A stretch of DNA of 64,000 nt from contig NIVC01000558.1 in the NCBI GenBank assembly GCA_002269645.1, forward strand, positions 248,001-312,000. Direction: 5' to 3'. This document shows positions 31,787 to 63,836 of this stretch, piece by piece. The DNA comes from Macrostomum lignano. Taxonomy: Eukaryota. The notes under the pieces are model-generated. The model worked only from the letters and a program-made list of their open reading frames with translations, was not told where the DNA came from and did no database searches. The position numbers were made by a program, and so were the translations under genes. The stretch's first letter is position 1. Each line of letters begins with the position of its first letter.

Positions 31787-34700
31787 TCAGGATGAGGCAC
31801 TCAGGAAGCTGTGCCGCAGCAGCTCCGCGGTGTCCGCTCGCTTCCTCGGGTCATAGTCTACGCACCTGAGGTAGAAGTCCTTCAGGCCGGCTGAGAACCC
31901 GTCCGCAATCCGAGGCATCTTCTGCTTTCTAAACCGCAGAATGCCAATATTTTCAATTGGCTGGTCTCCATCAGGAGGCTGCATGGCCGTCAGCTCATAC
32001 ACGGTGCAGCCGAAGGCCCACACGTCGGTCTTGGCTGAGTACAGAAGTGATTTCAATTTTGTGTCGAACAGCTCCGGAGCCATGAAGTACATGGTACCTT
32101 TTGGTCCGAAGCCTGTGCTAAGACCGCAGGTCTTCTCAATCTCCTTGGCCAGACCGAAGTCGATCAGCTTGATGACGCCCTCGTTGGTGAGCATAATATT
32201 GGAGCTCTTAATGTCACGGTGCAAGATAGCGCCCTCCGGCTGGCAGTGCAGAAAGTTCAGGCCTGAGCAGATCTGCAGGAGCAGTTTTGAGCAGTCATGA
32301 GACCCCATACCTGCTCCCACCCACACTGATCCCACACTAATCCCACACTGATCCCACACTGATCCCACACTGATCCCACACTGATCCCACACTGATCCCA
32401 CACTGATCCCACACTGATCCCACGCTGATCCCACACTGATCCCACACTAATCCCACATCCCACCCATGCCAGGCAATGCCAGAGAACTCAGAGACACACC
32501 TGTCTGGAGAAGTCCCTGACCCCGGACTCCTTGAACGGCTTTTTTTGACGCTGCATCAGCTCAAAGAGGCTGTGACCCGAGACCAGCTCGGTGAAGATGT
32601 ACAGCCCATCCGACTTCTGCTCGCACTTGAGGAACTGCAGGATGTTGGGATGCGAGAGTCGCTTGAGGATCTCAACTCCCCGCTTCTCCATCTCGACGGC
32701 TCTCTGCAGCTTCCCCGATTGGCCGGTGCCGCTCAGGGGCAGCACCTTGACAGCCACCGTCTGGTTGCGGTCTGTGAGGGCCTTGTACACCTTGCCGAAT
32801 CCACCACGGCCGATGAGCTGCTTCTTGTCGTCCTGCAGAATGAAGTCCCAGTCGGTGAAGCTGGGGTCCAGCTGCTTCTTGGCGCTGAAACATGAAATGA
32901 AGGAATTGATGAATTTTGTGTTGCTTGGGGCTTTCTGAGTACTTTGGAGTCACTCAGCCTTCTGCGTCACTACTCTTATGCGTCACCATCCTTATGCGTC
33001 ACCACCCTTCTGCGTCACCAGCCTTCTGCGTCAACCACCCTTCTGCGTCACCACCCTTCTGCGTCACCAACCTTCTGCGTCACCAGCCTTCTGCGTCACC
33101 ACCCTTCTGCGTCACCACCCTTCTGCGTCACCACCCTTCTGCGTCACCACCCTTCTGCGTCACCACCCTTCTGCGTCACCACCCTTCTGCGTCACCACCC
33201 TTCTGCGTCACCGCCCTTCTGCGTCACCACCCTTCTGCGTCACCACCCTTCTGCGTCACCGCCCTTCTGCGTCACCACCCTTCTGCGTCACCAGCCTTCT
33301 GCGTCACCAGCCTTCTGCGTCACCGCCCTTCTGCGTCACCACCCTTCTGCGTCACCACCCTTCTGCGTCACCACCCTTCTGCGTCACCACCCTTCTGCGT
33401 CACAACCCTTCTGCGTCACCACCCTTCTGCGTCACCACCCTTCTGCGTCACCACCCTTCTGCGTCACCACCCTTCTGTCATGAGCATCCTCGGGCGCCGT
33501 GAAGAGCCAGGTTCCTTTTGGCTGGTTGCCTGCGCTCAGACTGCAGGTTCTGATGAGTTCACTAACTGTCGCCTCATCATTTCTCACCGAGTCTTTTCAG
33601 GCAGTCCGACCGGAGTCGGCCCAGGCGGCTGGACGCTCTGTCGAGCTCGTGGGCGGGGACGCGGAGCTGCAGCGCTGTAGGAAGAGTTTTACGAGTGAGC
33701 CCGTTAAACATGTCTGGGTCGCCAACTCTGCTAATGCTTCGTGTATAAAAAGCCCTTGCAGATTGAGCTTTGGGTGGCGCTATATGGACATTGGGGGCGC
33801 GATCGGGAGATTGCGGCGCCACGAAGAGATTGGAGGCTCTCAAATCATTCAAGTGCCAATATTTTGAACATCACACCAAGTACATTCCTACTAAAATCGG
33901 AGAGTTTGAAACTTCGGAGAGTTTGATGGCACTTGCACTCGCTGATGCTTTGTGTTTAGAAACTGCAGATTGAGCTGTGGGTGGGGGTTGTGGGCCCATA
34001 GGGAGGTTGGAGGCGCCATGGGGAGATTGGAGACGCCGTTGGGAGGTTGGAGGCGCCATGAAGAGGTTTAAGGCGCCATGGGGAGGTTGGGGGCGCCATG
34101 GGGAGGTTGGAGGCGCCATGAGGAGGTTGGAGGCGCCATGGGGAGGTTGGGGGCGCCATGGGGAGGTTGGGGCACCATGGGGAGGTTGGAGGCGCCATGT
34201 AGAGGTTGGGGGCGCCATGAGGAGCTGTACTGACAGATTCATGACACCCTCGCTTGACTGCGGCGCTGCTGAGAATTTCAGGGCGCCGATCATCAAAGCA
34301 ATGAATTTCAATGAATTTTCGCCAAAAAACATTTTCAGAATTTTCAGTGTCAGGCAGCAGCTCTCAGTCAGGACTCACCCAGCTGAGGCGGCAGTCGGCG
34401 CTGAGCTGCCAGCGGGAGGCCGAGAGGCTTCGAGCTGCCGCTGCGTGGAGGAAATCCAGGCCCGCTTTGCTGACTCGTCTGTGAGGCACCGCCGACTCGC
34501 AACAACATCAGCCGGTGTTTCGCCCCTGTTGTTCTTCAAGCTGAGCATTTCGGCTCCGATTTGGTCAAAAATGAACTGAAGAGAGTCGACTGGCTGCCAC
34601 TGAGCGGCCAAATGGACGGCCGTGTTACCGTCTTTGCCAGGAACTGTGAGACAGTCGCTGCCGAGCTCCTTCACCAGCCACTTCAGATTTGAATTGTCAG

Positions 34701-36153
34701 ACTTCCCAGCAGCAATGTGAAATGCTGTTTTATCACATTCTCCCTTCAGCCGAAAGCAGTCAGTTCCGATCTGTCTCTTGATCCACTCCAGCGACTCGAT
34801 GCCCTGATACAGAGCGGCCAAATGGACGGCCGTGTCACCGTCTTTGTCAGGAACTGTGAGACAGTCGCTGCCGAGCTCCTTCACCAGCCACTTCAGATTT
34901 GAATTGTCAGACTTCTGAGCAGCAGAGTGAAATGCCGTTCTCTTCCAGAACCCTCCGTTTAGCCGAAAGCAGTCAGTTCCGATCTGTCTCTTGATCCACT
35001 CCAGCGACTCGATGCCCTGATGCTTAGCGGCCAAATGGATGGCCGTGTCACCGTCTTTGTCAGGAACTGTGAGACAGTCGCTGCCGAGCTCCTTCACCAG
35101 CCACTTCAGATTTGAATTGTCAGACTTCTTAGCAGCAATGTGAAATGCTGTTCTATCCCACCATCCCTTCAGCCGAAAGCAGTCAGTTCCGATCTGTCTC
35201 TTGATCCACTCCAGCGACTCGATGCCCTGATGCTCAGCGGCCAAATGGACGGCCGTGTCACCGAGTATGTCAGGAACTGTGAGACAGTCGCTGCCGAGCT
35301 CCTTCACCAGCCACTTCAGATTTGAATTGTCAGACTTCTCAGCAGCAAAGTGAAATGGTCTTCTATCACCATCTCCCTTCAGCCGAAAGCAGTCAGTTCC
35401 GATCTGTCTCTTGATCCACTCCAGCGACTCGATGCCCTGATGCTGAGCGGCCAAATGGACGGCCGTGTCACCGTCTTTGTCAGGAACTGTGAGACAGTCG
35501 CTGCCGAGCTCCTTCACCAGCCACTTCAGATTTGAATTGTCAGACTTCCCAGCAGCAATGTGAAATGCTGTTTTATCACATTTTCCCTTCAGCCGAAAGC
35601 AGTCAGTTCCGATCTGTCTCTTGATCCACTCCAGCGACTCGATGCCCTGATACAGAGCGGCCAAATGGACGGCCGTGTAACCGTCTTCGTCAGGAACTGT
35701 GAGACAGTCGCTGCCGAGCTCCTTCACCAGCCTCTTCAGACAAGAGTTGCTTTTTCTGTTCATAGCGGCAAAGTGAGCGACTGTCTGTTTCAATCTATCG
35801 ACAATTCTCAAGCAGCCTCTGCCTCCCTTCTCTTTAACCAGCTTCATCCAAGATTCGTCCTGATGCTGGGCAGCCAAGTGCACTGGAGTCTCGTCCCTAT
35901 CATTTCCAAGTGTCAGACAGTCGGGTCCGAATCTGTCAATCAGCAGCTCCAGGCACGACGAGCTCACCGGCTTGCAGGCCACGTGGTGGGCCAGCGGCAT
36001 TTTGCGAAGCTCTTCAAAGGGATAGTCTTGCTTGTCGAACCCGCCCACCTCCAGCTCGATGTTGCTGCCGACCTCACCGCACAGTCGCTGCAGCTGCTCG
36101 CTGTCTCCAGCCTCCAGCGCCGCTCTCAGCTTCCGCTCCATCTCCGTTGCCAT
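31787..36153 (-). CDS. Ankyrin-repeat / Ser-Thr protein kinase (STE/MAP3K-like), paralogue A, ~910 aa; exons 36153-34379, 33674-33588, 32884-32500, 32272-31787
   Basis: ATG in a gccATGg context with an in-frame stop upstream. GT-AG introns with matching phases (2, 2, 0); the total of 2733 nt equals 911 codons. Structure: N-cap, then 5 x 70-aa double-ankyrin units, then C-cap, a Pro/Arg linker exon and a kinase with [24 protein letters not shown] and DVWAFG intact. Confidence 0.9.
32315..34215. repeat. Intronic arrays of kinase gene A: 11-bp cccacactgat (32315-32455), 16-bp ttctgcgtcaccaccc (32955-33478), ~21-bp gggaggttggaggcgccatgg (33985-34215)
   Basis: Each intron carries its own array. 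Confidence 0.88.
34636..35688 (-). repeat. Coding 210-bp tandem repeat (two ankyrin repeats per unit), 5 units, paralogue A
   Basis: Unit consensus [70 protein letters not shown]; one unit is 71 aa. Confidence 0.95.
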
Positions 36154-36769
36154 GGCTACACGGCTTCTCCTAGCAGCGCTTCTCTGCCGATCTGCTGTCT
36201 GCCGCAGCTGTTCCACACGGCTTCAAACTGAGTGCTTTGCTCTTCTTCAAGCGAATTCGCCTGCCAGCTCAGCAGCAGCAGCAAAAGTCCCGCTGTCACG
36301 GACTGAAATCTCTGAGCTCTCCCTGTGCAGAGAAATTTGTTTAAATGGACTGAGGCCGATTCTCTTCTCTGACCCAGCGGCTGTGTTTGAGGCCTGATTG
36401 GGTGCCAGGGGGCCCGGCAGCTGCTCTGCTCAGCGGGGTGAGAGATGCAGGAGCAGTGAGATGCTGCGAGCTCTGCTGAGTTAAACAATGAGAGCTGACT
36501 GTGGCTGCGTGCTCGGCATAGCAAGTGCATTGCCAGTGGGCAGGGGTGAAGGGGCGGCAGCTGAGACACGAGGGGAGAGAGATGGAGAGGGGAGAGAGGG
36601 CAGGGCTGAGGCCTGGAAACCAAGCGGACCTCTCTGACGATTTTCAATTTAGTTTGCAATTGTATGGCAAATATTTTGCAGAAAAATGCTTATAACTGAG
36701 GATTTTCTGTTGCTGAAGTCGAAATAGATGGAGAATGGTCGTTTGGGTTTGCCAGCGACACTTTACATC

Positions 36770-37150
36770 AGTATCTAACAGATTACACCAGTATCTAACA
36801 GGTTCTCGTGACATCAGTATCTAACAGCTGACATCAGTATCTAAGAGGTGACATCGGTATCTAACAGGTGACATCAGTATCTAACAGGTGACATTGGTAT
36901 CTAACAGGTGACATCAGTATCTAGCAGGTGACATTAGTATCTAACAGGGGACACCAGTATCTAACAGGTACTCGTAACATCAGTATCTAACAGGTGACAT
37001 CAGTATCTAACAGGTGACATCAATATCTAACAGCTGACATTAGTATCTAACAGGTGACATCAGTATCTAACAGGTGACACCTGTATCTAACCGGTGACAT
37101 CAGTATCTAACGGGTGACATCAGTATCTAACAGGTGACATTAGTATCTGA
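36770..37150. repeat. 20-bp minisatellite (gacatcagtatctaacaggt)n
   Basis: Directly visible. Confidence 0.9.
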
Positions 37151-37425
37151 TCTGGCTTTGAAAAAATTACCTGATCAAAGAAATGATCCATTAAAATTGC
37201 TATTTTTTAATTGCTTGGTTTAGAGGACTGCTGACTTTAACCATACATCCAGGGTGTCCTAGTAGCTTGACTACGGGCTACTGTGGTATATTTCATATTT
37301 CATAAATATTTCATGTAACATAATATCCGCTAACATCCGCATAGAGGAGCTATCATTTGTAGATGGGCTAATTGGGGAATTAAAGCAAGCTTACGTGCAA
37401 ATAGTTAATGTTTTTAGCATAGATA

Positions 37426-37811
37426 TCAACGCTTGACTTCAAACTTGACGTCTTTGCACTCGTTGATTGTTTCGCAAGAATCTGAAATAGAAAAAAATAT
37501 CAGTAAAGATATATGGATGCTGAAATATTTTATATTTTCTATTTGGTAAAGAAGGAACAGCTTCTTACCAGCAGTGCAGCAGATGCCTCTGGAAGCGCAG
37601 CGACCCTTGCCTCCCAGACAGGCGGTGGCGATGCGACCGCAGCCCAGGACTTTCGCTGGCAGACGGCGACACGCGGCGGTGTCCGGGCCGAAGCCGACGC
37701 GACATCCGCCGTGGGGGTGACAGCAGATGGCGCGGCCGAAACAGCGGCCCCAGCCGTGGGAGCAGCTCAGGCAGGAACCGTTGATGGTATTGGTTGCCGG
37801 TACATGACTGC
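37426..37811 (-). CDS. Neurophysin domain of a vasopressin/oxytocin-type precursor; exons 37811-37569 and 37481-37426 (first coding exon not confidently located)
   Basis: Spliced translation: SHVPATNTINGSCLSCSHGWGRCFGRAICCHPHGGCRVGFGPDTAACRRLPAKVLGCGRIATACLGGKGRCASRGICCTA|DSCETINECKDVKFEVKR*. It has 14 Cys in neurophysin spacing, with GRCFG-x-x-ICC and GRCA-x-x-GICC. Strong donor gtaag (37568) and acceptor tttttttctatttcag (37482-37483). The phase-1 intron falls after the second CC, as in vertebrate AVP/OXT genes. Confidence 0.88.
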
Positions 37812-38024
37812 CTGCGGGTTTGAAGTTATGGTAGACTTTAAAATACCTGTGTTTGGATTCGGCGTGCCGTTACATTAATTTGAGGTTCAAGGCCCAGGGC
37901 TGGCTGGCCATCTCAAAATGCCCACAGTGTGCATACTGTTGTAGCACAGTGGTACAGCGTCGGACTATCGAAAAAAGCCACAGAACTCTTAACGGTTCCT
38001 GGATATTGAAAAGCTCGGTGCAGC

Positions 38025-38640
38025 CAGCTGTGCTACTGCAAGTACTGAATATGGCTCGCTTGACTGCAATCTGCATGAATTTGTGTCTGACTTTGCTGCC
38101 TTCACTTCACCCAGCTGTGCTACTGCAAGTACTGAATATGGCTCGCTTGACTGCAATCTGCATGAATTTGTGTCTGACTTTGCTGCCTTCACTTCACCCT
38201 GCTGTGCTACTGCAAGTACTGAATATGGCTCGCTTGACTGCAATCTGCATGAATTTGTGTCTGACTTTGCTGCCTTCACTTCACCCTGCTGTGCTACTGC
38301 AAGTACTGAATATGGCTCGCTTGACTGCAATCTGCATGAATTTGTGTCTGACTTTGCTGCCTTCACTTCACCCTGCTGTGCTACTGCAAGTACTGAATAT
38401 GGCTCGCTTGACTGCAATCTGCATGAATTTGTGTCTGACTTTGCTGCCTTCACTTTACCCAGCTGTGCTATTGCAAGTACTGAATATGGCTCGCTTGACT
38501 GCAATCTGCATGAATTTGTGTCTGACTTTGCTGCCTTCACTTCACCCTGCTGTGCTACTGCAAGTACTGAATATGGCTCGCTTGACTGCAATCTGCATGA
38601 ATTTGTGTCTGACTTTGCTGCCTTCACTTCACCCTGCTGT
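38025..38640. repeat. 87-bp tandem repeat, ~7 copies, upstream (probably intronic) of the neurophysin exon
   Basis: 29-aa periodicity in the overlapping ORFs; no dibasic sites, so probably non-coding. Confidence 0.9.
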
Positions 38641-39169
38641 GGCACCTCATCAATGGCGCTTTGTGCTCAAATGCAGTTTAGTTATATATTAGTTATTATA
38701 ATAATTTTGCATTTTGTACTCACGGTTTATTTTGCTAATCTTTATACACAGTTCAGGTGTGCATTTTGTAATCCAGCTTTGATAATCTTTGGATTTATTT
38801 ATCCGGTGCAACAGACTGACCCTGCTTCTACTCGCCCCGACCCTAGCCATCCAAGCAGCTCCAGACCAGCCGAGCTCAATGCCCAGAGGACAATGGCGAA
38901 GCTGAGGTTTAAGGGCCGAGCCGGCAGCCTGCGAACGCGTGTCAAAAGAAGGCTCGCTGCAAATGCTTTTTTAGGAGGGGGGAGGGGGTTGATGGCTGCC
39001 TAAAAGCGGCACAGAGACAAAATGCGTGAGCGCTAACCCTGACCCGCTCAGACAATTCACTGCTTTGCATTGCGCCTGTGCGCTCTCGGCTAAAATTTAC
39101 TACCTTTGATATTCGGCACTTCGGGTTTTCAGATGCGAGCCTCGCACTCATATTGGGCGTCTAGAATTA

Positions 39170-41915
39170 GGGTGAGGGGCAGGGAGGGAGACAGGCTGGG
39201 ATGTAGGGTGAGGAGCAGGGAGAGAGACAGGCTGGGATGTAGGGTGAGGGGCAGGGAGAGAAACAGGCTGGGATGTAGGGTGAGGAGCAGGGAGAGAGAC
39301 AGGCTGGGATGTAGGGTGAGGGGCAGGGAGAGAGACAGGCTGGGATGTAGGGTAAGGAGCAGGGAGAGAGACAGGCTGGGATGTAGGGTGAGGGGCAGGG
39401 AGAGAGACAGGCTGTGATGTAGGGTGAGGGGCAGGGAGAGAGACAGGCTGGGATGTAGGGTGAGGGGCAGGGAGAGAGACAGGCTGTGATGTAGGGTGAG
39501 GGGCAGTATGAGCGACAGGCTGGGATGTAGGGTGAGGGGCAGGGAGAGAGACAGGCTGGGATGTAGGGTGAGGGGCAGGGAGAGAGACAGGCTGGGATGT
39601 AGGGTGAGGGGCAGGGAGAGACAGGCTGGGATGTAGGGTGAGGGGCAGGGAGAGAGACAGGCTGTGATGTAGGGTGAGGGGCAGTATGAGCGACAGGCTG
39701 GGATGTAGGGTGAGGGGCAGAGAGGGAGACAGGCTGGGACGTAGGGTGAGGCGCGGGGAGATACAGGCTGGGATGTAGGGTGAGGGGCGGCGAGATACAG
39801 GCTGGGATCTAGGGTGAGGGGCAGGGAGAGAGACAGGCTAGGATGTAGGGTGAGGGGCAGGGAGAGAGACAGGCTGGGATGTAGGGTGAGGGGCAGGGAG
39901 AGACAGGCTGGGATGTAGGGTGAGGGGCAGGGAGAGAGACAGGCTGTGATGTAGGGTGAGGGGCAGTATGAGCGACAGGCTGGGATGTAGGGTGAGGGGC
40001 AGGGAGGGAGACAGGCTGGGATGTAGGGTGAGGCGCGGGGAGAGAAAGGCTGGGATGTAGGGTGAGGGGCGGGGAGATACAGGCTGGGATGTAGGGTGAG
40101 GGGCAGGGAGAGAGACCGGCTGGGATGTAGGGTGAGGGGCAGGGAGAGAGACAGGCTGGGATGCAGGGTGAGGGACAAGAAGAGATAGGCTGCGATGTAG
40201 GGTGAGGGGCAGGGAGGGAGACAGGCTGGGATGTAGGGTGAGGGGCAGGGAGAGAGACAGGCTGGGATGTAGGGTGAGGGGCAGGGAGAGAGACAGGCTG
40301 GGATGTAGGGTGAGGGGCAGGGAGGGAGAAAGGCTGGGATGTAAGGTGAGGGGCAGGGAGAGAGACAGGCTGGGATGTAGGGTGAGGGGCAGGGAGAGAG
40401 ACAGGCTAGGATGTAGGGTGAGGGGCAGGGAGAGAGACAGGCTGGGATGTAGGGTGAGGGGCGGGGAGATACAGGCTGGGATGTAGGGTGAGGGGCAGGG
40501 AGAGAGACAGGCTGTGATGTAGGGTGAGGGGCAGTATGAGCGACAGGCTGGGATGTAGGGTGAGGGGCAGGGAGGGAGACAGGCTGGGATGTAGGGTGAG
40601 GCGCGGGGAGATACAGGCTGGGATGTAGGGTGAGGGGCGGGGAGATACAGGCTGGGATGTAGGGTGAGGGGCAGGAAGAGAGACCGGCTGGGATGTAGGG
40701 TGAGGGGCAGGGAGAGAGACAGGCTGGGATGCAGGGTGAGGGACAAGAAGAGATAGGCTGGGATGCAGGGTGAGGGACAAGAAGAGATAGGCTGGGATGT
40801 AGGGTGAGGGGCAGGGAGGGAGACAGGCTGGGATGTAGGGTGAGGGGCAGGGAGAGAGACAGGCTGGGATGTAGGGTGAGGGGCAGGGAGAGAGACAGGC
40901 TGGGATGTAGGGTGAAGGGCAGGGAGAGAGACCGGCTGGGATGTAGGGTGAGGGGCAGGGAGAGAGACAGGCTGGGATGCAGGGTGAGGGACAAGAAGAG
41001 ATAGGCTGGGATGCAGGGTGAGGGACAAGAAGAGATAGGCTGGGATGTAGGGTGAGGGGCAGGGAGGGAGACAGGCTGGGATGTAGGGTGAGGGGCAGGG
41101 AGAGAGACAGGCTGGGATGTAGGGTGAGGGGCAGGGAGAGAGACAGGCTGGGATGTAGGGTGAGGGGCAGGGAGAGAGAAAGGCTGTGATGTAGGGTGAG
41201 GGGCAGTATGAGCGACAGGCTGGGATGTAGGGTGAGGGGCAGGGAGAGACAGGCTGGGATGTAGGGTGAGGCGCGGGGAGATACAGGCTGGGATGTAGGG
41301 TGAGGGGCGGGGAGATACAGGCTGGGATGTAGGGTGAGGGGCAGGGAGAGAGACAGGCTGGGATGTAGGGTGAGGGGCAGGGAGGGAGAAAGGCTGGGAT
41401 GTAGGGTGAGGGGCAGGGAGAGAGACAGGCTGGGATGTAGGGTGAGGGGCAGGGAGAGAGACAGGCTGGGATGTAGGGTGAGGGACAAGAAGAGATAGGC
41501 TGGGATGTAGGGTGAGAGGCAGGGAGGGAGACAGGCTGGGATGTAGGGTGAGAGGCAGGGAGAGAGACAGGCTGGGATGCAGGGTGAGGGACAAGAAGAG
41601 ATAGGCTGGGATGCAGGGTGAAGGACAAGAAGAGATAGGCTCGGATGTAGGGTGAGGGGCAGGGAGGGAGAAAGGCTGGGATGTAGGGTGAGGGGCAGGG
41701 AGAGAGACAGGCTGGGATGTAGGGTGAGGGGCAGGGAGAGAGACAGGCTGGGATGTAGGGTGAGGGGCAGGGAGAGAGACAGGCTGGGATGTAGGGTGAG
41801 GGACAAGAAGAGATAGGCTGGGATGTAGGGTGAGAGGCAGGGAGGGAGACAGGCTGGGATTTAGGGTGAGGGGCAGGGAGAGAGACAGGCTGGGATTTAG
41901 GGTGAGAGGCAGGGC
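39170..41915. repeat. 36-bp G-rich minisatellite (ggctgggatgtagggtgaggggcagggagagagaca)n, ~76 copies
   Basis: Directly visible; the long minus-strand ORFs (934, 596 and 466 aa) are artefacts of it. The same unit occurs at 50588-51303. Confidence 0.95.
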
Positions 41916-42306
41916 TGGCAAAATACCTTCCAAAATACCTCCGAAATCGCGAATAAAACAGCTGCCATCAATCCAATCACTTCATGACTTCATAACTTGC
42001 ATCATTTCTTGGCCCTCGTGGGTATATAGTCGTTCAGTTCAAAAATAGTTTTAAATCTCCGCAAACAATATCGCTTACAATACGCTACTCATAGTACTCA
42101 TAAGAATATCATTTGCCGTTAAAGAGAAGAACGGCTGCATGGAATTTTTCCAGAAATTCGTTTGCACCTGAAGATTCGCTATGCTGGAGTTTTTTACTCA
42201 AAAGGAATGACAAAACTCTTACACTGCCGTGAGTCGTGCCTCGGCTCTCGGGGGTGGGCGCTCAGTTTTGGAATTTTCCAGCGTCTCCGATGCACCTCAC
42301 TCTGCA

Positions 42307-42468
<162 letters not shown>

Positions 42469-43216
42469 CAGCTTGTGTTGTGTTGCGCACCTGTAAGAAT
42501 TCAATTTTATTGCACATTCGAGTCCGCCTCTCCATCGGTTTCATTGTCCCGCATTTGGCTTGTAAAAAACTGGCTTCTCAAGCAGCTGATTGCATTTTAT
42601 AACAAATGCTCGCTCAGCTCGAGTTTTGTTTAGCTGCGAGCTTGAGCAGTCCTGCTCACAGGGCTCTCTTCGCCAGCTACATGAGCACGCATATCAACTG
42701 ACAGAATTCAGCAATCCACCCTCGCTTTGGCCCACTGATGTTCCACACTTCTTTATATTTTTGCCTCCAAGAAGTCCAAAAGCAACAGCCAATCAGATTT
42801 TGCTTTCGATGCGCAGATTTTTAGTGGCGATAAAAGTGAAAATTGAATACTGATTTCTTATTTCGAAAACGTTGGACTAACCTTAGAAAATGAGAAACAG
42901 TCCATCACAGGCGCGTGTGGTTGGTGCTGACTCACACAGCCATCCTTCAGGTAGCTGACTGCTCACACAGCCAGTGCAATTACATGTACATTATTTATCC
43001 GGTGCAACACACTGACTCAGCAGTTCAGCATTAATAATCTAGTTTTTCACCTGCATTGCTCAAATAAAAGTATTGCTGTTTCAATGTTTCTGTCAGATCA
43101 CCAATGGATGACAATGCAGAGCAGCACATGTAAAGTATGTGCATTTGAGCATAAAGTTCTCGGCTGGTGTTTGTCTTTGCTATTTTGTTCGTGGTTTGGA
43201 ATCTCAGATTCGTGCT

Positions 43217-50587: not shown

Positions 50588-51303
50588 AAGAGACAGGCTG
50601 GGATGAAGGGTGAGGGGCAGGGAGAGAGACAGGCTGGGATGAAGGGTGAGGGGCAGGGAGGGAGACAGGCTGGGATGTAGGGTGAGGGGCAGGGAGGGAG
50701 ACAGGCTGGGATGTAGGGTGAGGGGCAGGGAGAGAGACAAGCTGGGATGTAGGGTGAGGGACAGTATGAGAGACAGGCTGGGATGTAGGGTGAGGGACAG
50801 GGAGAGAGACAGGCTGGGATGTAGGGTGAGGGGGCGGGGAGATACAGGCTGGGATGTAGGGTGAGGGGCAGGGAGAGAGACAGGCTGGGATGTAGGGTGA
50901 GGGGCAGGGAGAGAGACAGGCTGGGATGTAGGGTGAGGGACAGTATGAGAGACAGGCTGGGATGTAGGGTGAGGGACAGTATGAGAGACAGGCTGGGATG
51001 TAGGGTGAGGGGCGGGGAGATACAGGCTGGGATGTAGGGTGAGGGGCAGGGAGAGAGACAGGCTGGGATGTAGGGTGAGGGGCAGGGAGAGAGACAGGCT
51101 CGGATGTAGGGTGAGGGGCGGGGAGATAGACAGGCTGGGATGTAGGGTGAGGGGCAGGGAGGGAGACAGGCTGGGATGTAGGGTGAGGGGCAGGGAGAGA
51201 GACAGGCTGGGATGTAGGGTGAGGGGCAGGAAGGGAGACAGGCTGGGATGTAGGGTGAGGGGCAGGGAGAGAGACAGGCTGGGATGCAGGGTGAGGGACA
51301 GGG
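50588..51303. repeat. Second array of the 36-bp G-rich unit, ~20 copies
   Basis: Same unit as 39170-41915; the right flanks share aatctccgcaaacaatatcgcttaca. Confidence 0.92.
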
Positions 51304-51991
51304 TTGGTCGCCGGCCCATGGGAGGGGCCAATATCGATACTGCATGGTTGGACACCCACAACAACTCCAAGAAACATGAAAAAGCGCATAAAACCCGGTA
51401 CGGCAGCCGCCATCAATCTCTATGCATCGCTTCTTTGGCTCTCGCGGATATACGAGTATAATCTGCCAATCTAAAAATATTTTTAATCTCCGCAAACAAT
51501 ATCGCTTACAGTAAGCTACTCATAAGACTGGTGCGGCAAGCATATCCTTGTTGTAGAAGAGAATACCCGTATAGCCTATTAGGAAAATGTATTGCCAACT
51601 GCTCATCAAGGAGTCACCAAGCAACAATCAATCCGAATTGGTTTGCGATGTGAAGTTTTTCAGTGGCGATAAAACTGTAATAAATAGTAATTTATTATTT
51701 AGAAAACTTTCGAATAATCACAGGGTAAAAAACTGAACGGAAAGAAAAAATATTATAAAAACAAAAGTTCACATTAATTGAGTAAGGTTAAACAAATCAA
51801 CTTGAGTAGACATGGGAGCCGATTAACAATTAGATTAAAGTGCACTTGAGCAGAAGGGGCCAAAAATTAACGTAATTGAGAATGGTACAGCAGATCCACT
51901 TTAGTAAGCCTCGGAGCCGAATACCAGCTACCAGCATACGGTGGGTTTGAGCTGAAGGCCATGGAAACACAGCAGTCAAGAGAAGCAAAAT

Positions 51992-54900: not shown

Positions 54901-57740
54901 GGGACTAAGCGACATGACATATGCATGAATTAATAATTCTCCGATATACGCCTGCATGCAGCCTACCAGAAAATTATGATAACTGCTGGATATGAGAGGG
55001 TAGAGAGAGAAGAGTAAAGAAGACTGTCATATCAAACAGGAGACTCCCATGTCTAACAGGAGACTGCCATGTCTAACAGGAGACTCCCATGTCTAACAGG
55101 AGACTCCCATGTCTAACAGGAGACTCCCATGTCTAACAGGAGACTGCCATGTCTAACAGGAGACTCCCATGTCTAACAGGAGACTCCCATGTCTAACAGG
55201 AGACTCCCATGTCTAACAGGAGACTCCCATGTCTAACAGGAGACTCCCATGTCTAACAGGAGACTCCCATGTCTAACAGGAGACTCCCATGTCTAACAGG
55301 AGACTCCCATGTCTAACAGGAGACTCCCATGTCTAACAGGAGACTCCCATGTCTAACAGGAGACTCCCATGTCTAACAGGAGACTCCCATGTCTAACAGG
55401 AGACTCCCATGTCTAACAGAAGACTCCCATGTCTAACAGGAGACTCCCATGTCTAACAGGAGACTCCCATGTCTAACAGGAGACTGCCATGTCTAACAGG
55501 AGACTCCCATGTCTAACAGGAGACTCCCATGTCTAACAGGACACCATGTCTAACAGCAAAAGTGTGCTATCAGTTTAAAACCATACTCTGCTATCTAGAG
55601 TAGTCTCAAAAGCTTTTCCCACCAAATTCGGTCCAAATAAAAGCAGAAATACGGTTCGATTCTCATTTTCCTGCTCAAAACAGCGGCTGAGTTGGCTGAG
55701 CAGCCCTCATGCCCCGCCATTGTCTCAGTTCAATGCAATGCGAAGCCACTGCAAGCACTTATTTATGTACATTGCACAGTGCACTGAGTGAGCACAGACT
55801 CAAGTGTCTGCCAGCATCATTGATGCAGCATCAGCGGTTCAAATGAGATGCACAGAATGGCTGATGCTCGTTCGAACACACTTTTGTGCAGATGAAGCAA
55901 CAAGCCGCACCACCCAGCCTCCAGCATAGCACATTGCTCATCTGTCCACTGACTCTCTCCGAGCTCGAGTCTCCCCCATCGCCATGGCAACTGGAGAAGC
56001 TCTGCAGCGTCTGTGCAGTTAAGGGCTCTGCACATCTCTTTGCTCACTGCGTGAGGGGCCGAGCCGTGAGGCAGCCTCAGACCTCCTGACACTCTGCAAG
56101 CCCTTTGAAAACAATGGCCAGCTTCATTGCATGCCTGCTTCATCAGCTCTGCCCTCCCCGCACTGTTGTGTGCACTGCACTAAGTGAGGCTCACAAATGA
56201 CGCTGCGAAATATTGAAATATGAAATGGGACACAGCGGGTCACGCCAAGTCAGGACACAGCGGGTCACGGCAAGTCAGGACACAGCGGGTCACGGCAAGT
56301 CAGGACACAGCGGGTCACGGCAAGTCAGGACACAGTGGGTCACGGCAAGTCAGGACACAGCGGGTCACGGCAAGTCAGGACACAGCGGGTCACGGCAAGT
56401 CAGGACACAGCGGGTCACGGCAAGTCAGGACACAGCGGGTCACCGCAAGTCAGGACACAGCGGGTCACGGCAAGTCAGGACACAGCGGGTCACGGCAAGT
56501 CAGGACACAGCGGGTCACGGCAAGTCAGGACACAGCGGGTCACGGCAAGTCAGGACACAGCGGGTCACGGCAAGTCAGGACACAGTGGGTCACGGCAAGT
56601 CAGGACACAGCGGGTCACGGCAAGTCAGGACACAGCGGGTCACCGCAAGTCAGGACACAGCGGGTCACGGCAAGTCAGGACACAGCGGGTCACGGCAAGT
56701 CAGGACACAGCGGGTCACGGCAAGTCAGGACACAGCGGGTCACGGCAAGCCAAGCGGTGGCTGTATATTTAACTGAGAAGTCTTGAGTAAGCACTGGACT
56801 TCCTGCTCCAACAGTTGCTAATAAAAAGTCAGTCCAAAAATCAAATACAAAAATCAGTGCCGGAAAAAGCGCCAAACCGGTGGCTGAAAAATGTGAAAAA
56901 TTCTCGGCAACACAAAATCTGGAGTAGGCATTGAGCAGTCTGAGCAGATTGGGGAAATTGTGATTGGCTCTGTGCCAGAGTTTCAAAATCAACATTGATC
57001 AGCTTGAAACTGAAAGGGCACTCGAGTTAGCACAAAAATGTCTCATTAATTGAAAGGAGCAACCGGTAAAACAAACCCGGCAGTCAAATAAATAAAATTT
57101 GAATTCCGAATCGCAGCCGAATAAGCGAAACTGTGATTGGATAATTGATCCGGGCATCGGGAAGCAGCAGGTGATCAATAGACAAAACGATAATTCAAAA
57201 TTCAAAATCTGAATGAGCAGAATGAGCAGTTCGAACAAACAAAGCAGCCGGATAAACAAAAAGAAAATTGGATAAACAAAAAGGTCAATTGGATAAACAA
57301 AATGGGCAATCAGATAAACAAAAAGAGCAATCAGATAAACAAAAAGAGCAATCAGATAAACAAAAAGGGCAATTGGATAAACAAAAAGGCAATCAGATAA
57401 ACAAAAAAGGCAATCGGATAGACAGAAAGAGCAATCGAATAAACAAAAAACGCAATCAGATAAACCAAAAGAGCAATCGGATGAACAAACAAAGCAGCCG
57501 GATAAACAAAAAGGGCCATCGGATAAACAAAAAGAGCAATCGGATAAACAAAACGGGCGATCAAATAAACAAAATGGGCAAAAAATAAGCCAAACGGGTA
57601 ATCGAATAAACAAGAAGGTCAATCGAATAAACAAAAAAGGCAATCGGATAAACAAAAGGTCAATCGGATAAACAAAAACGGAAATCGGATAAACAAAAAG
57701 GGCAATCGGATAAACAAAAAGGTCAATCGGATAAACAAAA
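51992..57740. repeat. Copy-B minisatellites: 29-bp (~11x, 51992-52306), 30-bp (~74x, 52484-54690), 20-bp (~26x, 55033-55555), 25-bp (~21x, 56229-56750), ~21-bp A-rich (57245-57740)
   Basis: Directly visible; same units as in copy A. Confidence 0.92.
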
Positions 57741-57814
57741 GCAGACAACGTCAGCAATCAAAACCGCCCGCTCCAAGAGCCGCTCCGCTCCCTCACAGCC
57801 CAGCGCTCTCGCAG

Positions 57815-60800
57815 TCACGATGAGGCACTCAGGAAGCTGTGCCGCAGCAGCTCCGCGGTGTCCGCTCGCTTCCTCGGGTCATAGTCTACGCACCTGAGGT
57901 AGAAGTCCTTCAGGCCGGCTGAGAACCCGTCCGCAATCCGAGGCATCGCCCGCCCTCCGCACCTCAGCACGGCGATCCGGAAGTGCTGAACGTTCGCGTC
58001 AGGAGGCTGCATGGCCGTCAGCTCATACACGGTGCAGCCGAAGGCCCACACGTCGGTCTTGGCTGAGTACGGAATCGAATCGCCCTCGCCCATGAACAGC
58101 TCGGGCGCCATGAAGTAGGGGGTGCCTTTGGGATCAACGCCTGTGCTCAGGCCGCAGGTGCCGACAATCTCCTTGGCGAGGCCGAAGTCGATCAGCTTGA
58201 TGACGCCCTCGTTGGTGAGCATCACATTGGAGCTCTTGATGTCACGGTGCAAAATGGCGCCCTCCGGCTGGCAGTGCAGGAAGTTCAGGCCTGAGCAGAT
58301 CTGCAGGTCGAGCAGTTTTGGGTACTCAAAAAGTGCATGAATTCATTTTAAATCCCACCCTGATGCCACACTGATCCCACACTGACCCCACACTGATACC
58401 ACACTGATCTCACACTGATCCCACACTGATCCCACACTGATCCCACACTGATCCCACAATGATCCCACACTGATCCCACACTGATCCCACACTGATCCCA
58501 CAATGATCCCACACTGATCCCACACTGATCCCACACTGATCCCACACTAATCCCACACTGATTCCACCCTGATTCCACCCTGATCCCACCCTTACCAGAA
58601 AATTAATATGCCAGAGAACTCAGAGACGCACCTGTCTGGAGAAGTCCCTGACCCCGGACTCCTTGAACGGCTTGTTCTGACGCTGCATCAGCTCAAAGAG
58701 GCTGTGACCCGAGACCAGCTCGGTGAAGATGTACAGCCCGTCCGACTTCTGCTCGCACTTGAGGAACTGCAGAATGTTGGGATGCGAGAGTCGCTTGAGG
58801 ATCTCAACTCCCCGCTTCTCCATCTCGACGGCTTTCTGCAGCTTCCTCGATTGGCCGGTGCCGCTCAGGGGCAGCACCTTGACAGCCACCGTCTGGTTGC
58901 GGTCTGTGAGGGCCTTGTACACCTCACCGAATCCGCCACGGCCGATGAGCTGCTTCTTGTTGTCCTGCAGGATGAAGTCCCAGTCGGTAAAGCTGGGGTC
59001 CAGCTGCTTCTTGGCGCTGAAACATGAAATGAAGGAATTGATGAATTTTGTGTTGCTTGGAGCTTTCTGAGTACTTTGGAGTCACTCAGCCTTCTGCGTC
59101 ACCACCCTTCTGCGTCACCACCCTTCTGCGTCACCACCCTTCTGCGTCACCACCCTTCTGCGTCACCACCCTTCTGCGTCAACACCCTTCTGCGTCACCA
59201 GCCTTCTGCGTCACCAGCCTTCTGCGTCACCAGCCTTCTGCGTCACCAGCCTTCTGCGTCACCAGCCTTCTGCGTCACCAGCCTTCTGCGTCACCAGCCT
59301 TCTGCGTCACCAGCCTTCTGCGTCACTAGCCTTCTGCGTCACCAGCCTTCTGCGTCACCAGCCTTCTGCGTCACCAGCCTTCTGCGTCACCACCCTTCTG
59401 CGTCACCACCCTTCTGCGTCACCAGCCTTCTGCGTCACCACCCTTCTGCGTCACCATCCCTCTGCCATGAGCATCCTCGGGCGCCGTGAAGAGCCAGGTG
59501 CCTTTTGGCTGGTTGCCTGCGCTCAGACTGCAGGTTCTGATGAGTTCACTAACTGTCGCCTCATCATTTCTCACCGTGTCTCCTCAGGCAGTCCGACCGG
59601 AGTCGGCCCAGGCGGCTGGACGCTCTGTCGAGCTCGTGGGCGGGGACGCGGAGCTGCAGCGCTGTAGGAAGAGTTTTACGAGTGAGCCGTTAAACATGTC
59701 TGGGTCGCCAAGGCGGCACTTGAACTCTGCTAATGCTTCGTGTATAAGAAGCCCTGCAGATTGGGCTTTGGTGGCGCTATATGGACATTGGGGATGCGAT
59801 CGGGAGATTGCGGCGCCACGAAGAGATTTTGAACATATTATATTTAACATATTACATATTACAACATATTACATATTATATTATATTTTGAACATCACAC
59901 CAAGTACATTCCTACTAAAATCGGAGAGTTTGAAACTTCGGAGAGTTTGATGGCACTTGAACTCGCTGATGCTTTGTGTTAAAAAACTCCTGCAGATTGA
60001 GCTGTGGGTGGGGGTTGTGGGCCCATGGGGAGGTTGGAGGCACCATGGGGAGGTTAGAGGCGCCATGGGGAGGTTGGAGGCGCCATGGGGAGATTGGAGA
60101 CGCCATTGGGAGGTTGGAGGCGCCAAAGGGAGATTGGAGACACCATGGGGAGATTGGAGACGCCATTGGGAGGTTGGAGGCGCCACAGTAAGATTGGAGG
60201 CGCCATGGGGAGATTAGGGGCGCCATGAGGAGCTGCGCTGACAGATTCATGCCGCCATCGCTTGGCTGCGGCGCTGCTGAGAATATCAGGGCGCAGATCA
60301 TCAAAGCGCAATGAATTTTCTACAATGAATATTCTCAGTATTTTCACCTTCAGGCAGCAGTTCTCAGTCAGGACTCACCCAGATGAGGCGGCAGTCGGCG
60401 CTGAGCTGCCAGCGGGAGGCCGAGAGGCTTTGAGCCGCAGATGCGTGGAGGAAATCCAGGCCCGCTTTGCTGACTTGTCTGCGTCCCGCCGCGGACTCTC
60501 AACAACATCAGCCAGTGTTTTCCCCATGATGTTCTTCAAGCTGAACATTTCGGCTCCGATTTGGTTAAAAATGAACTGAAGAGAGCCGACTGGCTGATGC
60601 TGAGCGGCCAAATGGACGGCCGTGTCACCGCCTTCGTCAGGAACTGTGAGACAGTCGCTGCCGAGCTCCTTCACCAGCCACTTCAGATTTGAATTGTCAG
60701 ACTTCTCAGCAGCAAAGTGAAATGCCGTTTTATCCAACCATCCCTTCAGCCGAAAGCAGTCAGTTCCGATCTGTCCCTTGATCCACTCCAGCGACTCGAT

Positions 60801-63800
60801 GCCCTGATGCTGAGCGGCCAAATGGACGGCCGTGTCACCTCTAGAGTCAGGAACTGTGAGACAGTCGCTGCCGAGCTCCTTCACCAGCCACTTCAGATTT
60901 GAATTGTCAGACTTCCGAGCAGCAATGTGAAATGCCGTTTTATCCAACCATCTCTTCAGCCGAAAGCAGTCAGCTCCGATCTGTCTCTTGATCCACTCCA
61001 GCGACTCGATGCCCTGATGCTCAGCGGCCAAATGGACGGCCGTGTCACCGAGTATGTCAGGAACTGTGAGACAGTCGCTGCCGAGCTCCTTCACCAGCCA
61101 CTTCAGATTTGAATTGTCAGACTTCTCAGCAGCAATGTGAAATGCTGTTCTATCATCATCTCTCTTCAGCCGAAAGCAGTCAGTTCCGATCTGTCTCTTG
61201 ATCCACTCCAGCGACTCGATGCCCTGATGCTGAGCGGCCAAATGGACGGCCGTGGTACCGTATTTGTCAGGAACTGTGAGACAGTCGCTGCCGAGCTCCT
61301 TCACCAGCCACTTCAGCTTTGAATGGTCAGACTTCTTAGCAGCAATGTGAAATGCTGTTCTCTCACCATCTCCCTTCAGCTGAAAGCAGTCAGTTCCGAT
61401 CTGTCCCTTGATCCACTCCAGCGACTCGATGCCCTGATGCTGAGCGGCCAAATGGACGGCCGTGTCACCTCTAGAGTCAGGAACTGTGAGACAGTCGCTG
61501 CCGAGCTCCTTCACCAGCCACTTCAGCATTGAATTGTCAGACTTCTCAGCAGCAAAGTGAAATGCTGTTCTATCCCAGCATCCTCCCTTCAGCCGAAAGC
61601 AGTCAGTTCCGATCTGTCTCTTGATCGACTCCAGCGACTCGATGCCCTGATGCTGAGCGGCCAAATGGACGGCCGTGGTACCGTATTTGTCAGGAACTGT
61701 GAGACAGTCGCTGCCGAGCTCCTTCACCAGCCACTTCAGATTTGAATTGTCAGACTTCTCAGCAGCAATGTGAAATGCTGTTTTATCCCACCGTCCCTTC
61801 AGCCGAAAGCAGTCAGTTCCGATCTGTCCCTTGATCCACTCCAGCGACTCGATGCCCTGATGCTGAGCCGCCAAATGGACGGCCGTGTCACCGACTTTGT
61901 CAGGAACTGTGAGACAGTCGCTGCCGAGCTCCTTCACCAGCCACTTCAGATTTGAATTGTCAGACTTCTTAGCAGCAAAGTGAAATGCTGTTCTATCATC
62001 ATCTCCCTTCAGCTGAAAGCAGTCAGTTCCGATCTGTCCCTTGATCCACTCCAGCGACTCGATGCCCTGATGCTGAGCGGCCAAATGGACGGCCGTGTCA
62101 CCTCTAGAGTCAGGAACTGTGAGACAGTCGCTGCCGAGCTCCTTCACCAGCCACTTCAGATTTGAATTGTCAGACTTCTCAGCAGCAATGTGAAATGCTG
62201 TTCTATCCAACAATCCCTTCAGCCGAAAGCAGTCAGTTCCGATCTGTCTCTTGATCCACTCCAGCGACTCGATGCCCTGAAGCCAAGCAGCCAAATGGAC
62301 GGCCGTGTAACCGTCTTTGTCAGGAACTGTGAGACAGTCGCTGCCGAGCTCCTTCACCAGCCACTTCAGATTTGAATTGTCAGACTTCTCAGCAGCAAAG
62401 TGAAATGCCGTTTTATCCAACCATCCCTTCAGCCGAAAGCAGTCAGCTCCGATCTGTCTCTTGATCCACTCCAGCGACTCGATGCCCTGATGCTCAGCGG
62501 CCAAATGGACGGCCGTGTCACCGAGTATGTCAGGAACTGTGAGACAGTCGCTGCCGAGCTCCTTCACCAGCCACTTCAGATTTGAATTGTCAGACTTCTT
62601 AGCAGCAAAGTGAAATGCTGTTCTATCCAATAATCCCTTCAGCCGAAAGCAGTCAGTTCCGATCTGTCCCTTGATCCACTCCAGCGACTCGATGCCCTGA
62701 TGCTGAGCGGCCAAATGGACGGCCGTGGTACCGTATTTGTCAGGAACTGTGAGACAGTCGCTGCCGAGCTCCTTCACCAGCCACTTCAGATTTGAATTGT
62801 CAGACTTCTTAGCAGCAAAGTGAAATGCTGTTCTATCATCATCTCCCTTCAGCTGAAAGCAGTCAGTTCCGATCTGTCCCTTGATCCACTCCAGCGACTC
62901 GATGCCCTGATGCTGAGCGGCCAAATGGACGGCCGTGTCACCTCTAGAGTCAGGAACTGTGAGACAGTCGCTGCCGAGCTCCTTCACCAGCCACTTCAGA
63001 TTTGAATTGTCAGACTTCTTAGCAGCAAAGTGAAATGCTGTTCTATCATCATCTCCCTTCAGCCGAAAGCAGTCAGTTCCGATCTGTCTCTTGATCCACT
63101 CCAGCGACTCGATGCCCTGATGCTCAGCGGCCAAATGGACGGCCGTGTTACCGCATTTGTCAGGAACTGTGAGACAGTCGCTGCCGAGCTCCTTCACCAG
63201 CCACTTCAGATTTGAATTGTCAGACTTCCGAGCAGCAAAGTGAAATGCCGTTCTCTTCCAGAACCCTCCGTTCAGCCGAAAGCAGTCAGTTCCGATCTGT
63301 CTCTTGATCCACTCCAGCGACTCGATGCCCTGATGCTGAGCGGCCAAATGGACGGCCGTGTCACCGACTTTGTCAGGAACTGTGAGACAGTCGCTGCCGA
63401 GCTCCTTCACCAGCCTCTTCAGACAAGAGTTGCTTTTTCTGTTCATAGCGGCAAAGTGAGCGACTGTCTGTTTCAATCTATCGACAATTCTCAAGCAGCC
63501 TCTGCCTCCCTTCTCTTTAACCAGCTTCATCCAAGATTCGTCCTGATGCTGGGCAGCCAAGTGCACTGGAGTCTCGTCCCTATCATTTCCAAGTGTCAGA
63601 CAGTCGGGTCCGAATCTGTCAATCAGCAGCTCCAGGCACGACGAGCTCACCGGCTTGCAGGCCACGTGGTGGGCCAGCGGCATTTTGCGAAGCTCTTCAA
63701 AGGGATAGTCTTGCTTGTCGAACCCGCCCACCTCCAGCTCGATGTTGCTGCCGACCTCACCGCACAGTCGCTGCAGCTGCTCGCTGTCTCCAGCCTCCAG

Positions 63801-63836
63801 CGCCGCTCTCAGCTTCCGCTCCATCTCCGTTGCCAT
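57815..63836 (-). CDS. Ankyrin-repeat / Ser-Thr protein kinase (STE/MAP3K-like), paralogue B, ~1471 aa; exons 63836-60379, 59661-59575, 59016-58632, 58300-57815
   Basis: Same splice sites and phases as paralogue A; 4416 nt equals 1472 codons. 13 double-ankyrin units. Kinase motifs [30 protein letters not shown] and DVWAFG are intact. Confidence 0.9.
60636..63371 (-). repeat. Coding 210-bp tandem repeat (two ankyrin repeats per unit), 13 units, paralogue B
   Basis: Near-identical units with hypervariable codon patches; two units are 71 aa. Confidence 0.95.

Follow-up and report, generated by a model that had tools for sequence, protein, structure and literature searches.

Fungal NLR receptors can carry repeat domains of near-identical units, which vary in number and undergo concerted evolution with shuffling (Dyrka et al. 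2014, PMC4986451). Diversifying change in their ankyrin (ANK) repeats is limited to the concave surface, made up of the inner helices together with the beta-hairpin, and alternative effector domains are assorted combinatorially. Among metazoan ANK, TPR, and WD proteins, only 0.8% contain such repeats (PMC4986451). Here, we describe a stretch of 64,000 nucleotides from the flatworm Macrostomum lignano (positions 248,001 to 312,000 of contig NIVC01000558.1, assembly GCA_002269645.1), referred to as the window, which contains two paralogous genes, copies A and B, that share these features and fuse an array of near-identical ANK repeats to a protein kinase. We consider it probable, at roughly two chances in three, that these genes combine a variable recognition module with an effector enzyme, namely a diversified ANK groove with a catalytically competent kinase of the STE group, and that they are tandemly duplicated members of a large family. 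The two copies differ from the fungal proteins in that they are without a NACHT or NB-ARC NTPase, have N-terminal repeats and a C-terminal effector, employ a STE-group kinase (a caspase in sister genes), belong to an animal, and are built from a 70-residue pair of two different ANK repeats.

Designed ankyrin repeat proteins (DARPins), in the version of Binz et al. from 2003, are reportedly randomised at repeat positions 2, 3, 5, 13, 14, and 33. In the related ANK-N5C library, the randomised positions are 2, 3, 5, 10, 13, and 33 (PMC4308713). The M. lignano arrays have in common with these designs an invariant, consensus-like scaffold (set against DKDGYTPLHLAA) and diversity at positions 2, 3, 5, 10, 13, 14, and 33, which make up one continuous binding surface. 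In contrast to the designs, the arrays are natural, alternate two types of repeats that are 35 rather than 33 residues long, contain 10–26 variable repeats instead of two to five, draw on a limited and reused residue alphabet, and have an enzyme attached.

The closest described flatworm proteins are the platyhelminth ANK-caspases, in which an ANK pro-domain is placed directly on an effector enzyme (Genome Biol Evol 2024, PMC11463336). They were described as a feature of parasitic species, and neither hypervariable tandem arrays nor kinase genes were reported in that study. The C-terminal domain of copies A and B is a kinase and not a caspase with p20 and p10 domains; the M. lignano proteins P0020, P0031, P0033, and P0034 carry a homologous array, 41–49% identical to copy A, on a caspase.

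ANK repeats and a kinase domain are present in one polypeptide in TNNI3K, ILK, RIPK4/ANKK1, and the NEK-ANK proteins of Giardia, and the repeats of TNNI3K and ILK are also N-terminal. However, these proteins are only 23–31% identical to copies A and B, and none of them has a tandem near-identical array. The kinase comes first in RIPK4, ANKK1, and the NEKs, ILK is a pseudokinase, and TNNI3K, with its 10 ordinary repeats, belongs to the TKL kinases. Membership of the TNNI3K, ILK, or RIPK4/ANKK1 families was ruled out by the low identity, the reversed domain order in RIPK4/ANKK1, and the grouping of the kinase with STE rather than TKL enzymes. Coding minisatellites that combine an invariant scaffold with a few hypervariable specificity residues per unit and exchange units unequally are known from PRDM9, KRAB zinc-finger arrays, and TAL-effector repeats. 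Unlike the arrays of M. lignano, these have another fold, bind DNA, and carry no attached kinase or caspase.

Structure of the ankyrin arrays

Tandem Repeats Finder (TRF) detected 210-bp arrays at positions 34600–35740 of the window in copy A (5.4 copies) and 60594–63423 in copy B (13.4 copies), with 92% matches in each. Splitting the arrays at the CLTVP boundary gave five and 13 units of 70–71 residues, which confirms the five and 13 double-ANK units counted in an earlier note on this DNA, made from the sequence alone. The array of copy A spans 34639–35691 on the minus strand (residues 155–505) and contains 10 ANK repeats in units of 210 or 213 bp, as delimited by TRF, the unit split, and codon statistics. 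The array of copy B spans 60639–63374 on the minus strand (residues 155–1066) and contains 26 ANK repeats according to TRF and the unit split. The open reading frames (ORFs) that hold the arrays are uninterrupted over 613 codons in copy A and 1174 codons in copy B. Each unit consists of two 35-residue ANK repeats of different type; the odd repeat begins with aspartate and the even repeat with glycine.

An N-terminal cap region of 154 residues precedes each array, which is followed by a C-terminal capping repeat and by a linker of ~50–80 residues. In copy A, the N-terminal capping region, which includes a divergent first double ANK unit, is encoded by 35692–36153 (minus strand, residues 1–154), and the C-terminal capping ANK repeat and linker by 34379–34638 (minus strand), up to a GTGAGT splice donor. 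The corresponding regions of copy B are located at 63375–63836 (residues 1–154) and 60379–60638, both on the minus strand.

The product of the first exon of copy A was modelled using AlphaFold2 with a predicted local distance difference test (pLDDT) score of 92.4 and a predicted template modelling (pTM) score of 0.81. The model contains paired helices every ~35 residues, the N-terminal cap region is part of the solenoid, and the last ~20 residues have low pLDDT. The best Foldseek matches of the model are ankyrin-1, AnkB with 24 repeats, NOMPC, TRPA1, DARPins, and Espin1-AR with a target-normalised TM-score of 0.80. A sequence search of the array against the PDB identified NOMPC (E = 2e-28), Espin, TRPA1, and many DARPins. 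The repeats have the properties of ankyrin repeats: they are helix-turn-helix-loop units of 33–35 residues, carry the TPLH/AA signature, and stack into a solenoid. Each copy is predicted to form one continuous ANK solenoid, with ~16 repeats in the case of A and ~32 in that of B. No signal peptide, hydrophobic segment, or transmembrane segment was found in the proteins of copies A and B, which are therefore predicted to be soluble, and an intracellular location, as proposed previously, is consistent with this result.

A long solenoid may also serve a structural or mechanical purpose, as a spring or scaffold like NOMPC or ankyrin, so that the number of repeats would matter more than the identity of their surface. 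The best Foldseek matches include the long solenoids of ankyrin-1, AnkB, and NOMPC, and copy B has ~32 repeats, as could be expected of such a role. However, close paralogues range from three to 13 units, the proteins are without a membrane or channel domain, and hypervariability confined to the ligand groove is not predicted by a mechanical function, which we thus regard as extremely unlikely.

Variable positions of the repeat units

The 18 units of copies A and B have a mean pairwise identity of 93.1% at the nucleotide and 87.2% at the amino acid level, which reaches the ~85% threshold that defines highly internally conserved repeats in fungal NLRs. Variation affects 41 of the 213 aligned nucleotide columns, and only five codon columns contain a synonymous variant. 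In the odd repeat, the differences are focused on ANK positions 2, 3, 5, 13, and 14, and in the even repeat on positions 2, 3, 5, 10, and 13. Neighbouring codons can differ at up to six of six bases (AAA GAC versus TCT AGA) between identical flanks.

The concentration of variable sites was evaluated with a set, fixed in advance, of 12 codons (36 nucleotides) equivalent to the positions randomised in DARPins, for which the motif DxxGxT..H.AA aligns without gaps. The variable sites were placed on the groove by ungapped motif alignment to the ANK consensus and by the published library designs, rather than by solvent exposure. In the units from the window, 22 of the 41 variable nucleotides lie inside the 12 codons (hypergeometric P = 4.5e-10), and 24 when position 10 is added (P = 3e-10). 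The near-invariant scaffold with a few hypervariable codon positions, which had been noticed before, is thus confirmed, and so is the proposed likeness to a natural DARPin library: the hypervariable positions coincide with those of the designed libraries, modules are shuffled, and the number of units varies.

Rates of change were estimated by the Nei-Gojobori method. In the arrays of the window, the surface positions have a non-synonymous rate (dN) of 0.42, and the scaffold has a synonymous rate (dS) of 0.019 and a dN of 0.024. With the scaffold dS as the neutral yardstick, replacement at the surface is in 22-fold excess. A minimum-change count, in which the fewest changes per column were taken, was pooled over the 26 units that are present in A, B, L004, and L005, i.e. 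at four loci, and gave 44 non-synonymous changes on 30.2 surface sites versus eight synonymous changes on 41.7 scaffold sites, a 7.6-fold excess in rate (binomial P = 3e-10). The excess of non-synonymous change at the variable sites, which the earlier note had made a test of its proposal, was hence found by counting methods.

The same pattern is present in an independent array, L002, which is located on another contig, is linked to a caspase, and has units ending in CLSVR. Its scaffold is substantially different, and the layout of 70-residue double repeats is the same. The 12 codons hold 23 of its 36 variable nucleotides (P = 5e-13). The surface dN of L002 is 0.40, and its scaffold, with a dS of 0.052 and a dN of 0.015 (dN/dS 0.29), clearly appears from these rates to be under purifying selection. 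A comparison at the protein level, with 45 unique units of 15 family members, revealed hypervariability at these positions too. Judging from these comparisons, the variability pattern is explicable neither by sequencing or polishing errors nor by relaxed constraint alone.

The arrays could be regarded as neutral coding minisatellites in a genome prone to repeats, with the variable codons being simply unconstrained surface positions. The window contains 57 TRF rows, minisatellites are present in every intron of copies A and B, 15% of the genome is composed of simple and tandem repeats (PMC5730564), and the scaffold dN/dS of the arrays in the window is close to 1, all of which would fit such an origin. 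Nevertheless, non-synonymous change at the surface is 7.6 to 22 times faster than synonymous change in the scaffold, and unconstrained sites cannot outpace synonymous ones. Furthermore, the independent array L002 is hypervariable at the same positions on a scaffold under apparent purifying selection, long ORFs are kept in all five arrays examined, and adjacent codons differ at up to six of six bases between identical flanks. The neutral explanation is already disfavoured by these observations, and we consider it very unlikely.

Module shuffling and mosaic genes

Single ANK modules are found in changing combinations. The even repeats of units B2, B3, and B7 are identical, and the odd repeat of B2 is unlike those of B3 and B7; units B3, B7, and B10 have identical odd repeats, and the even repeat of B10 is different. 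Unit B5 has its odd repeat in common with B12 and its even repeat in common with B13. Module types such as SR-D-QH or GFWKR recur across A, B, L004, and L005. The scaffold dS is ~0.019 in each of three comparisons, namely among the units of A, among those of B, and between the two arrays. Paralogous segments from one inbred line contain 3, 5, 5, and 13 units and are ~90–98% identical outside the divergent exon of the kinase C-lobe. The arrays appear from these sequences to undergo concerted evolution with module shuffling, which is the regime described for the repeats of fungal NLRs (PMC4986451).

The divergence between copies A and B differs along the genes. The N-terminal cap and 164 nucleotides of the 5' flank are 100% identical over 626 nucleotides (35692–36317 versus 63375–64000), so that a very recent gene conversion is suggested for the 5' end. 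Further upstream, identity is 98.5% over the following 1.65 kb. In the C-terminal cap and linker (34379–34638 versus 60379–60638), there are ~26 non-synonymous and ~2 synonymous changes (dN 0.148, dS 0.027, dN/dS 5.4), several of them at ANK positions 1–5 and 14 of the cap. The exon of the kinase N-lobe has a dS of 0.086 and an omega of 0.2. The C-lobe exon, with a dS of 0.31 and 84.7% nucleotide identity, forms a divergent island in a duplication that is mostly ~90–97% identical, and the protein product of its A-type is identical to that of P0010, which is encoded on another contig. Because of this match and the part-by-part differences in divergence, the two genes appear to be mosaics, the parts of which have had separate histories, and gene conversion among members of the family is suggested.

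Two other routes to diversity were considered. Adenine-specific mutagenesis like that of diversity-generating retroelements was ruled out, as all four bases vary at the hypervariable codons. The layout of the variable lymphocyte receptors of lampreys, with an incomplete germline gene that is completed somatically from flanking cassettes, does not apply either; the germline genes are complete ORFs, and there is no cassette bank within the window.

Kinase domain

The kinase domain aligns end to end with STK25 (E = 2e-34) and includes the motif DVWAFG. All catalytic motifs are present: the G-loop, the VAIK lysine, the alpha-C glutamate, HRD..N, DFG, APE, DxWxxG, and the arginine of subdomain XI. 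The kinase is predicted to be catalytically competent, since these motifs are intact. Its best PDB matches are the STE20 kinases STK25, SLK, and MST4 (2e-34), followed by ASK1/MAP3K5 (3e-33) and NEK1 (9e-33). Relatives outside Macrostomum include a plant MAPKKK with 37% identity in the kinase region and a bird 'PAK3-like' protein with 34% identity. The kinase can be placed by sequence in the STE group in a general sense, with a MAP3K assignment not established and no orthologue assignable. The previous description as an active-looking, MAP3K-like kinase of the STE type was thus correct regarding the catalytic motifs and the group, but the MAP3K affinity was not demonstrated. Differences between the paralogous kinases cluster in the activation loop, in the loop after APE, and in the segment before the conserved MPRIADGF, which is roughly the alpha-G region.

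Gene structure and transcripts

Both genes are located on the minus strand and can be divided into one long ANK exon, an optional exon of 87 nucleotides, and two kinase exons. Copy A (31787–36153, from the first ATG to the stop codon) encodes 881 residues, or 910 with the cassette exon, as established from the ORFs, splice junctions, and conceptual translation. Its exons, with junctions read from the DNA, are 36153–34379, 32884–32500, and 32272–31787. The second of these (32500–32884) encodes the kinase N-lobe with the G-loop, VAVK, and the alpha-C helix, and the third (31787–32272) encodes the C-lobe of the 'A-type' haplotype and contains the stop codon. The optional in-frame exon is located at 33588–33674. 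Copy B (57815–63836) encodes 1442 residues, or 1471 with the cassette exon, in the exons 63836–60379, 59016–58632 (kinase N-lobe, 58632–59016), and 58300–57815 (kinase C-lobe of the 'B-type' haplotype, 57815–58300). Its optional exon at 59575–59661 is included in the annotated model P0003. Both genes are intact, with GT-AG at every junction and compatible exon phases, and the boundaries given in the earlier note for two intact paralogues correspond exactly to the first ATG and the stop codon of each.

The 87-nucleotide exon has good splice sites and keeps the frame in both copies. It is present in the annotated paralogue models P0002, P0003, P0009, P0010, and P0012 and missing from P0001 and P0004, and is therefore probably a cassette exon. 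The introns of both copies are all packed with minisatellites detected by TRF.

Copy B corresponds to the annotated gene BOX15_Mlig011736g1 (model P0003), as the contig that contains this gene is 100% identical to positions 47815–64000 of the window. The Mlig_3_7 annotation was derived purely from RNA-seq, by StringTie/TACO and mapped de novo transcripts (PMC5730564), and the existence of an annotated model therefore shows that copy B is transcribed, which provides the transcript support that had been called for. Model P0003 has 835 residues and four units, and omits nine of the 13 array units that are continuous in the genomic ORF. Model P0010 has two units versus three in the genome. Collapsed arrays in public models are the outcome expected of short-read transcript assembly.

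These discrepancies bear on whether the number of units or their variants could be artefacts of assembly or annotation, arising from mis-assembly or short-read polishing. Public models and genomic ORFs are in conflict (835 versus 1442–1471 residues for copy B), but short-read transcript models that collapse repeats explain this conflict. The genome was assembled from 130x PacBio data with reads that exceed the 2.8-kb array in length, the ORFs run uninterrupted over 1.8 and 3.5 kb, and a codon-structured pattern was found again on four further contigs or loci. An artefact is hence most improbable, although the assembly itself has weaknesses that are considered below.

Family members and exchange of effectors

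Copies A and B match ~37 M. lignano proteins with up to ~80% identity, and matches elsewhere show only generic ANK or kinase similarity. The two genes are thus not an isolated pair, and they appear from their sequences to be tandemly duplicated members of a multigene family with dozens of genes in M. lignano. The family has been seen so far almost only in this species, according to these searches: in an exhaustive HMMER search against 1.8 billion representative proteins, 15 of 20 clusters that were looked up by name among the top matches were from M. lignano.

The comparison with paralogues extended the earlier note in three respects, as arrays of this kind also carry a caspase or a second type of kinase, the family comprises dozens of genes, and public models collapse the arrays. 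In a second group of the family, which has near-identical units of its own, the array is fused either to a kinase (P0018, L003, 7.5 units; compared at the protein level only) or to a caspase (P0020, P0031, P0033, and P0034), with the histidine and the QACRG motif of the caspases intact. The unit ending in CLSVR is combined with a caspase in L002 and with a kinase in L003. Furthermore, P0016 carries an array of the first group on a different kinase type. The genes of L002 are located at 3–3728 and 12455–13728 and those of L003 at 10001–14262 and 23646–24262, so that a second family gene lies ~9–10 kb downstream in each locus. P0002 shares a contig with the window. The gene that adjoins P0002 and encodes only ANK repeats (L004 31072–33050) was rejected as a family member; it encodes an ordinary ANK protein.

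The one clear relative from outside Macrostomum, P0134 (L006/L007; Logan SRR28338164 and SRR28338163), is RNA-seq-derived, intronless, and 877 residues long. It is 38% identical, belongs to the same kinase subfamily, and has ordinary 33-residue ANK repeats without internal conservation. Because P0134 pairs the same kinase subfamily with ordinary, non-identical repeats, the ANK-kinase architecture is predicted to be older than the hypervariable arrays.

No published description of the family was found in the literature on Macrostomum ankyrin genes, conserved animal ANK repeats, and flatworm ANK-kinase expansions. The family is thus undescribed as far as the searchable literature shows, in agreement with the earlier note, which had not recognised it as described. 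The collapse of the arrays in public gene models means that proteome-based surveys under-describe the family.

Duplicated segments and other features of the window

Copy A is carried by a segmental duplication at 28080–37966, the upstream flank of which is 98.5% identical to that of the second copy at 52096–64000, which runs beyond the window; both were delimited by self-BLAST and by comparison of L001 with the window. A third copy of the duplicated segment was identified when L005 (contig NIVC01001041.1) was compared with positions 28000–46000 of the window. It has the flanking minisatellites in the same order, an array of only three units, and a different N-terminal cap, and possibly represents the copy carried by the duplicated DV1 chromosome. 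The duplication copies in the window share minisatellites with very different copy numbers, 16 versus 74 copies at 28466–28949 and 52482–54693, and 12 versus 26 copies at 29289–29530 and 55035–55556.

Much of the window consists of minisatellites, as reflected in the number of TRF rows. An uninterrupted Gag-Pol ORF of 1257 residues from a long terminal repeat retrotransposon is located at 19981–23754 on the plus strand, a few kilobases past the 3' flank of copy A, and contains a zinc knuckle, the protease motif DTGAS, the reverse transcriptase motif YQDDIL, and integrase motifs. A dispersed repeat is present at 7628–8231 and 46620–47234 with 91% identity and an ORF of ~130 residues inside. Between the two copies, from ~47986 downwards on the minus strand, the public annotation contains a 174-residue gene with a match to Pfam Hormone_5 (neurophysin), which was not recognised among the simple ORFs. 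A scan of the window against Rfam produced no match.

Proposed function of the array proteins

We propose that the array would act as a variable recognition surface, with its own combination of modules in each gene. Unequal recombination and gene conversion among units and paralogues would keep the scaffold near-identical and reshuffle single-ANK modules, and selection would keep the modules diverse. About five residues per repeat would stay hyperdiverse at the tip of the beta-turn and on the side of helix 1 that faces the groove, which form the canonical ligand-binding surface of ANK repeats. A flexible linker would join the solenoid to the C-terminal kinase, and ligand binding along the groove would recruit or activate this kinase, or the caspase that is the effector in sister genes. 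The proteins would thus be one-piece sensor-effectors. We infer the ligand binding, its coupling to the kinase, and the physiological role. The ligand is probably a protein or peptide, since long ANK solenoids, such as the AnkB structures among the Foldseek matches, bind extended peptides in their inner groove.

Several observations weigh against this interpretation. The ratio of non-synonymous to synonymous changes does not differ significantly between surface and scaffold (Fisher test, P = 0.14); therefore, the excess in rate, and not the ratio, carries the signal. The scaffold dN/dS of ~1 in the window arrays is based on small counts and implies that the invariance reflects recent homogenisation rather than demonstrated purifying selection. 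The units are related and recombining instead of being independent samples, and the tests are counts, which are no substitute for recombination-aware codon models. The surface diversity may be of old origin and only reshuffled, without new variants being generated. The annotated transcript model of copy B holds four units, not 13, and no full-length transcript with 13 units was seen; no annotated model of copy A turned up, although no search was aimed at one. Finally, the genome is hard to assemble, redundant, and was polished with short reads using Pilon, which carries a risk of mis-correction in repeats (PMC5730564).

For a variable recognition module joined to an effector, the leading candidate role, although unproven, would be to survey non-self or a partner in genetic conflict. 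A role in defence or conflict is favoured because of the effector swapping with caspases, the tandem clustering, and the gene conversion. Allorecognition, which the earlier note had named beside pathogen sensing, seems less likely in a solitary worm than the sensing of pathogens, viruses, or transposons. Tentatively, and with odds below even, the family may be a germline repertoire of 'one-piece' intracellular immune or conflict sensors that lack a NOD module and are diversified by recombination. The groove would bind proteins of pathogens, viruses, or transposons and activate the fused kinase for signalling or the caspase for cell death. If true, this would be convergent with the logic of fungal and plant NLRs and constitute a new class of animal innate receptor.

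Alternatively, the genes could encode variable adaptor-kinases for a fast-evolving endogenous process, such as reproduction or sexual conflict in this hermaphrodite or the regulation of lineage-specific partners, in which the groove would track rapidly evolving self proteins. The sequence evidence points to diversifying selection and not to its cause, rapid evolution is known for reproduction-related genes of Macrostomum (PMC7336406), and ANK domains are commonly adaptors for the substrates or partners of enzymes, with TNNI3K and the regulatory ANK subunits of PP6 being among the weak matches. However, the presence of the same array type on a caspase and the tandem clusters with gene conversion are more typical of sensors for defence or cell death, and neither ankyrin nor kinase genes are mentioned in PMC7336406. 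We therefore consider an endogenous process to be unlikely.

Regarding the fungal receptors, the analogy drawn by the earlier note is supported by the conservation of the repeats, their shuffling, and the diversification of their surface, but it does not extend to an NLR-like architecture. No Pfam match to NACHT or NB-ARC was found in any of the 37 paralogues, and the ANK solenoid, linker, and kinase account for the whole protein. NLR or STAND receptor identity was thus ruled out, as the central NACHT or NB-ARC P-loop NTPase is absent, and without this NOD module copies A and B are not NLRs. By analogy, it is the arrays that appear to behave like the repeat domain of a fungal NLR and like a natural DARPin library.

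The genes of M. lignano thus provide an animal family built on near-identical repeats with hypervariable binding residues, which is a hallmark of fungal NLRs. The diversity of the ANK repeats is located at the positions that protein engineers randomise, and the array is plugged into a kinase or caspase without a nucleotide-binding switch. If the arrays are recognition modules, the family would be a candidate variable receptor system for flatworm biology and a natural test of how many specificities the ANK scaffold can encode. It would also be a tractable model, as transgenesis and RNA interference are available in M. lignano.

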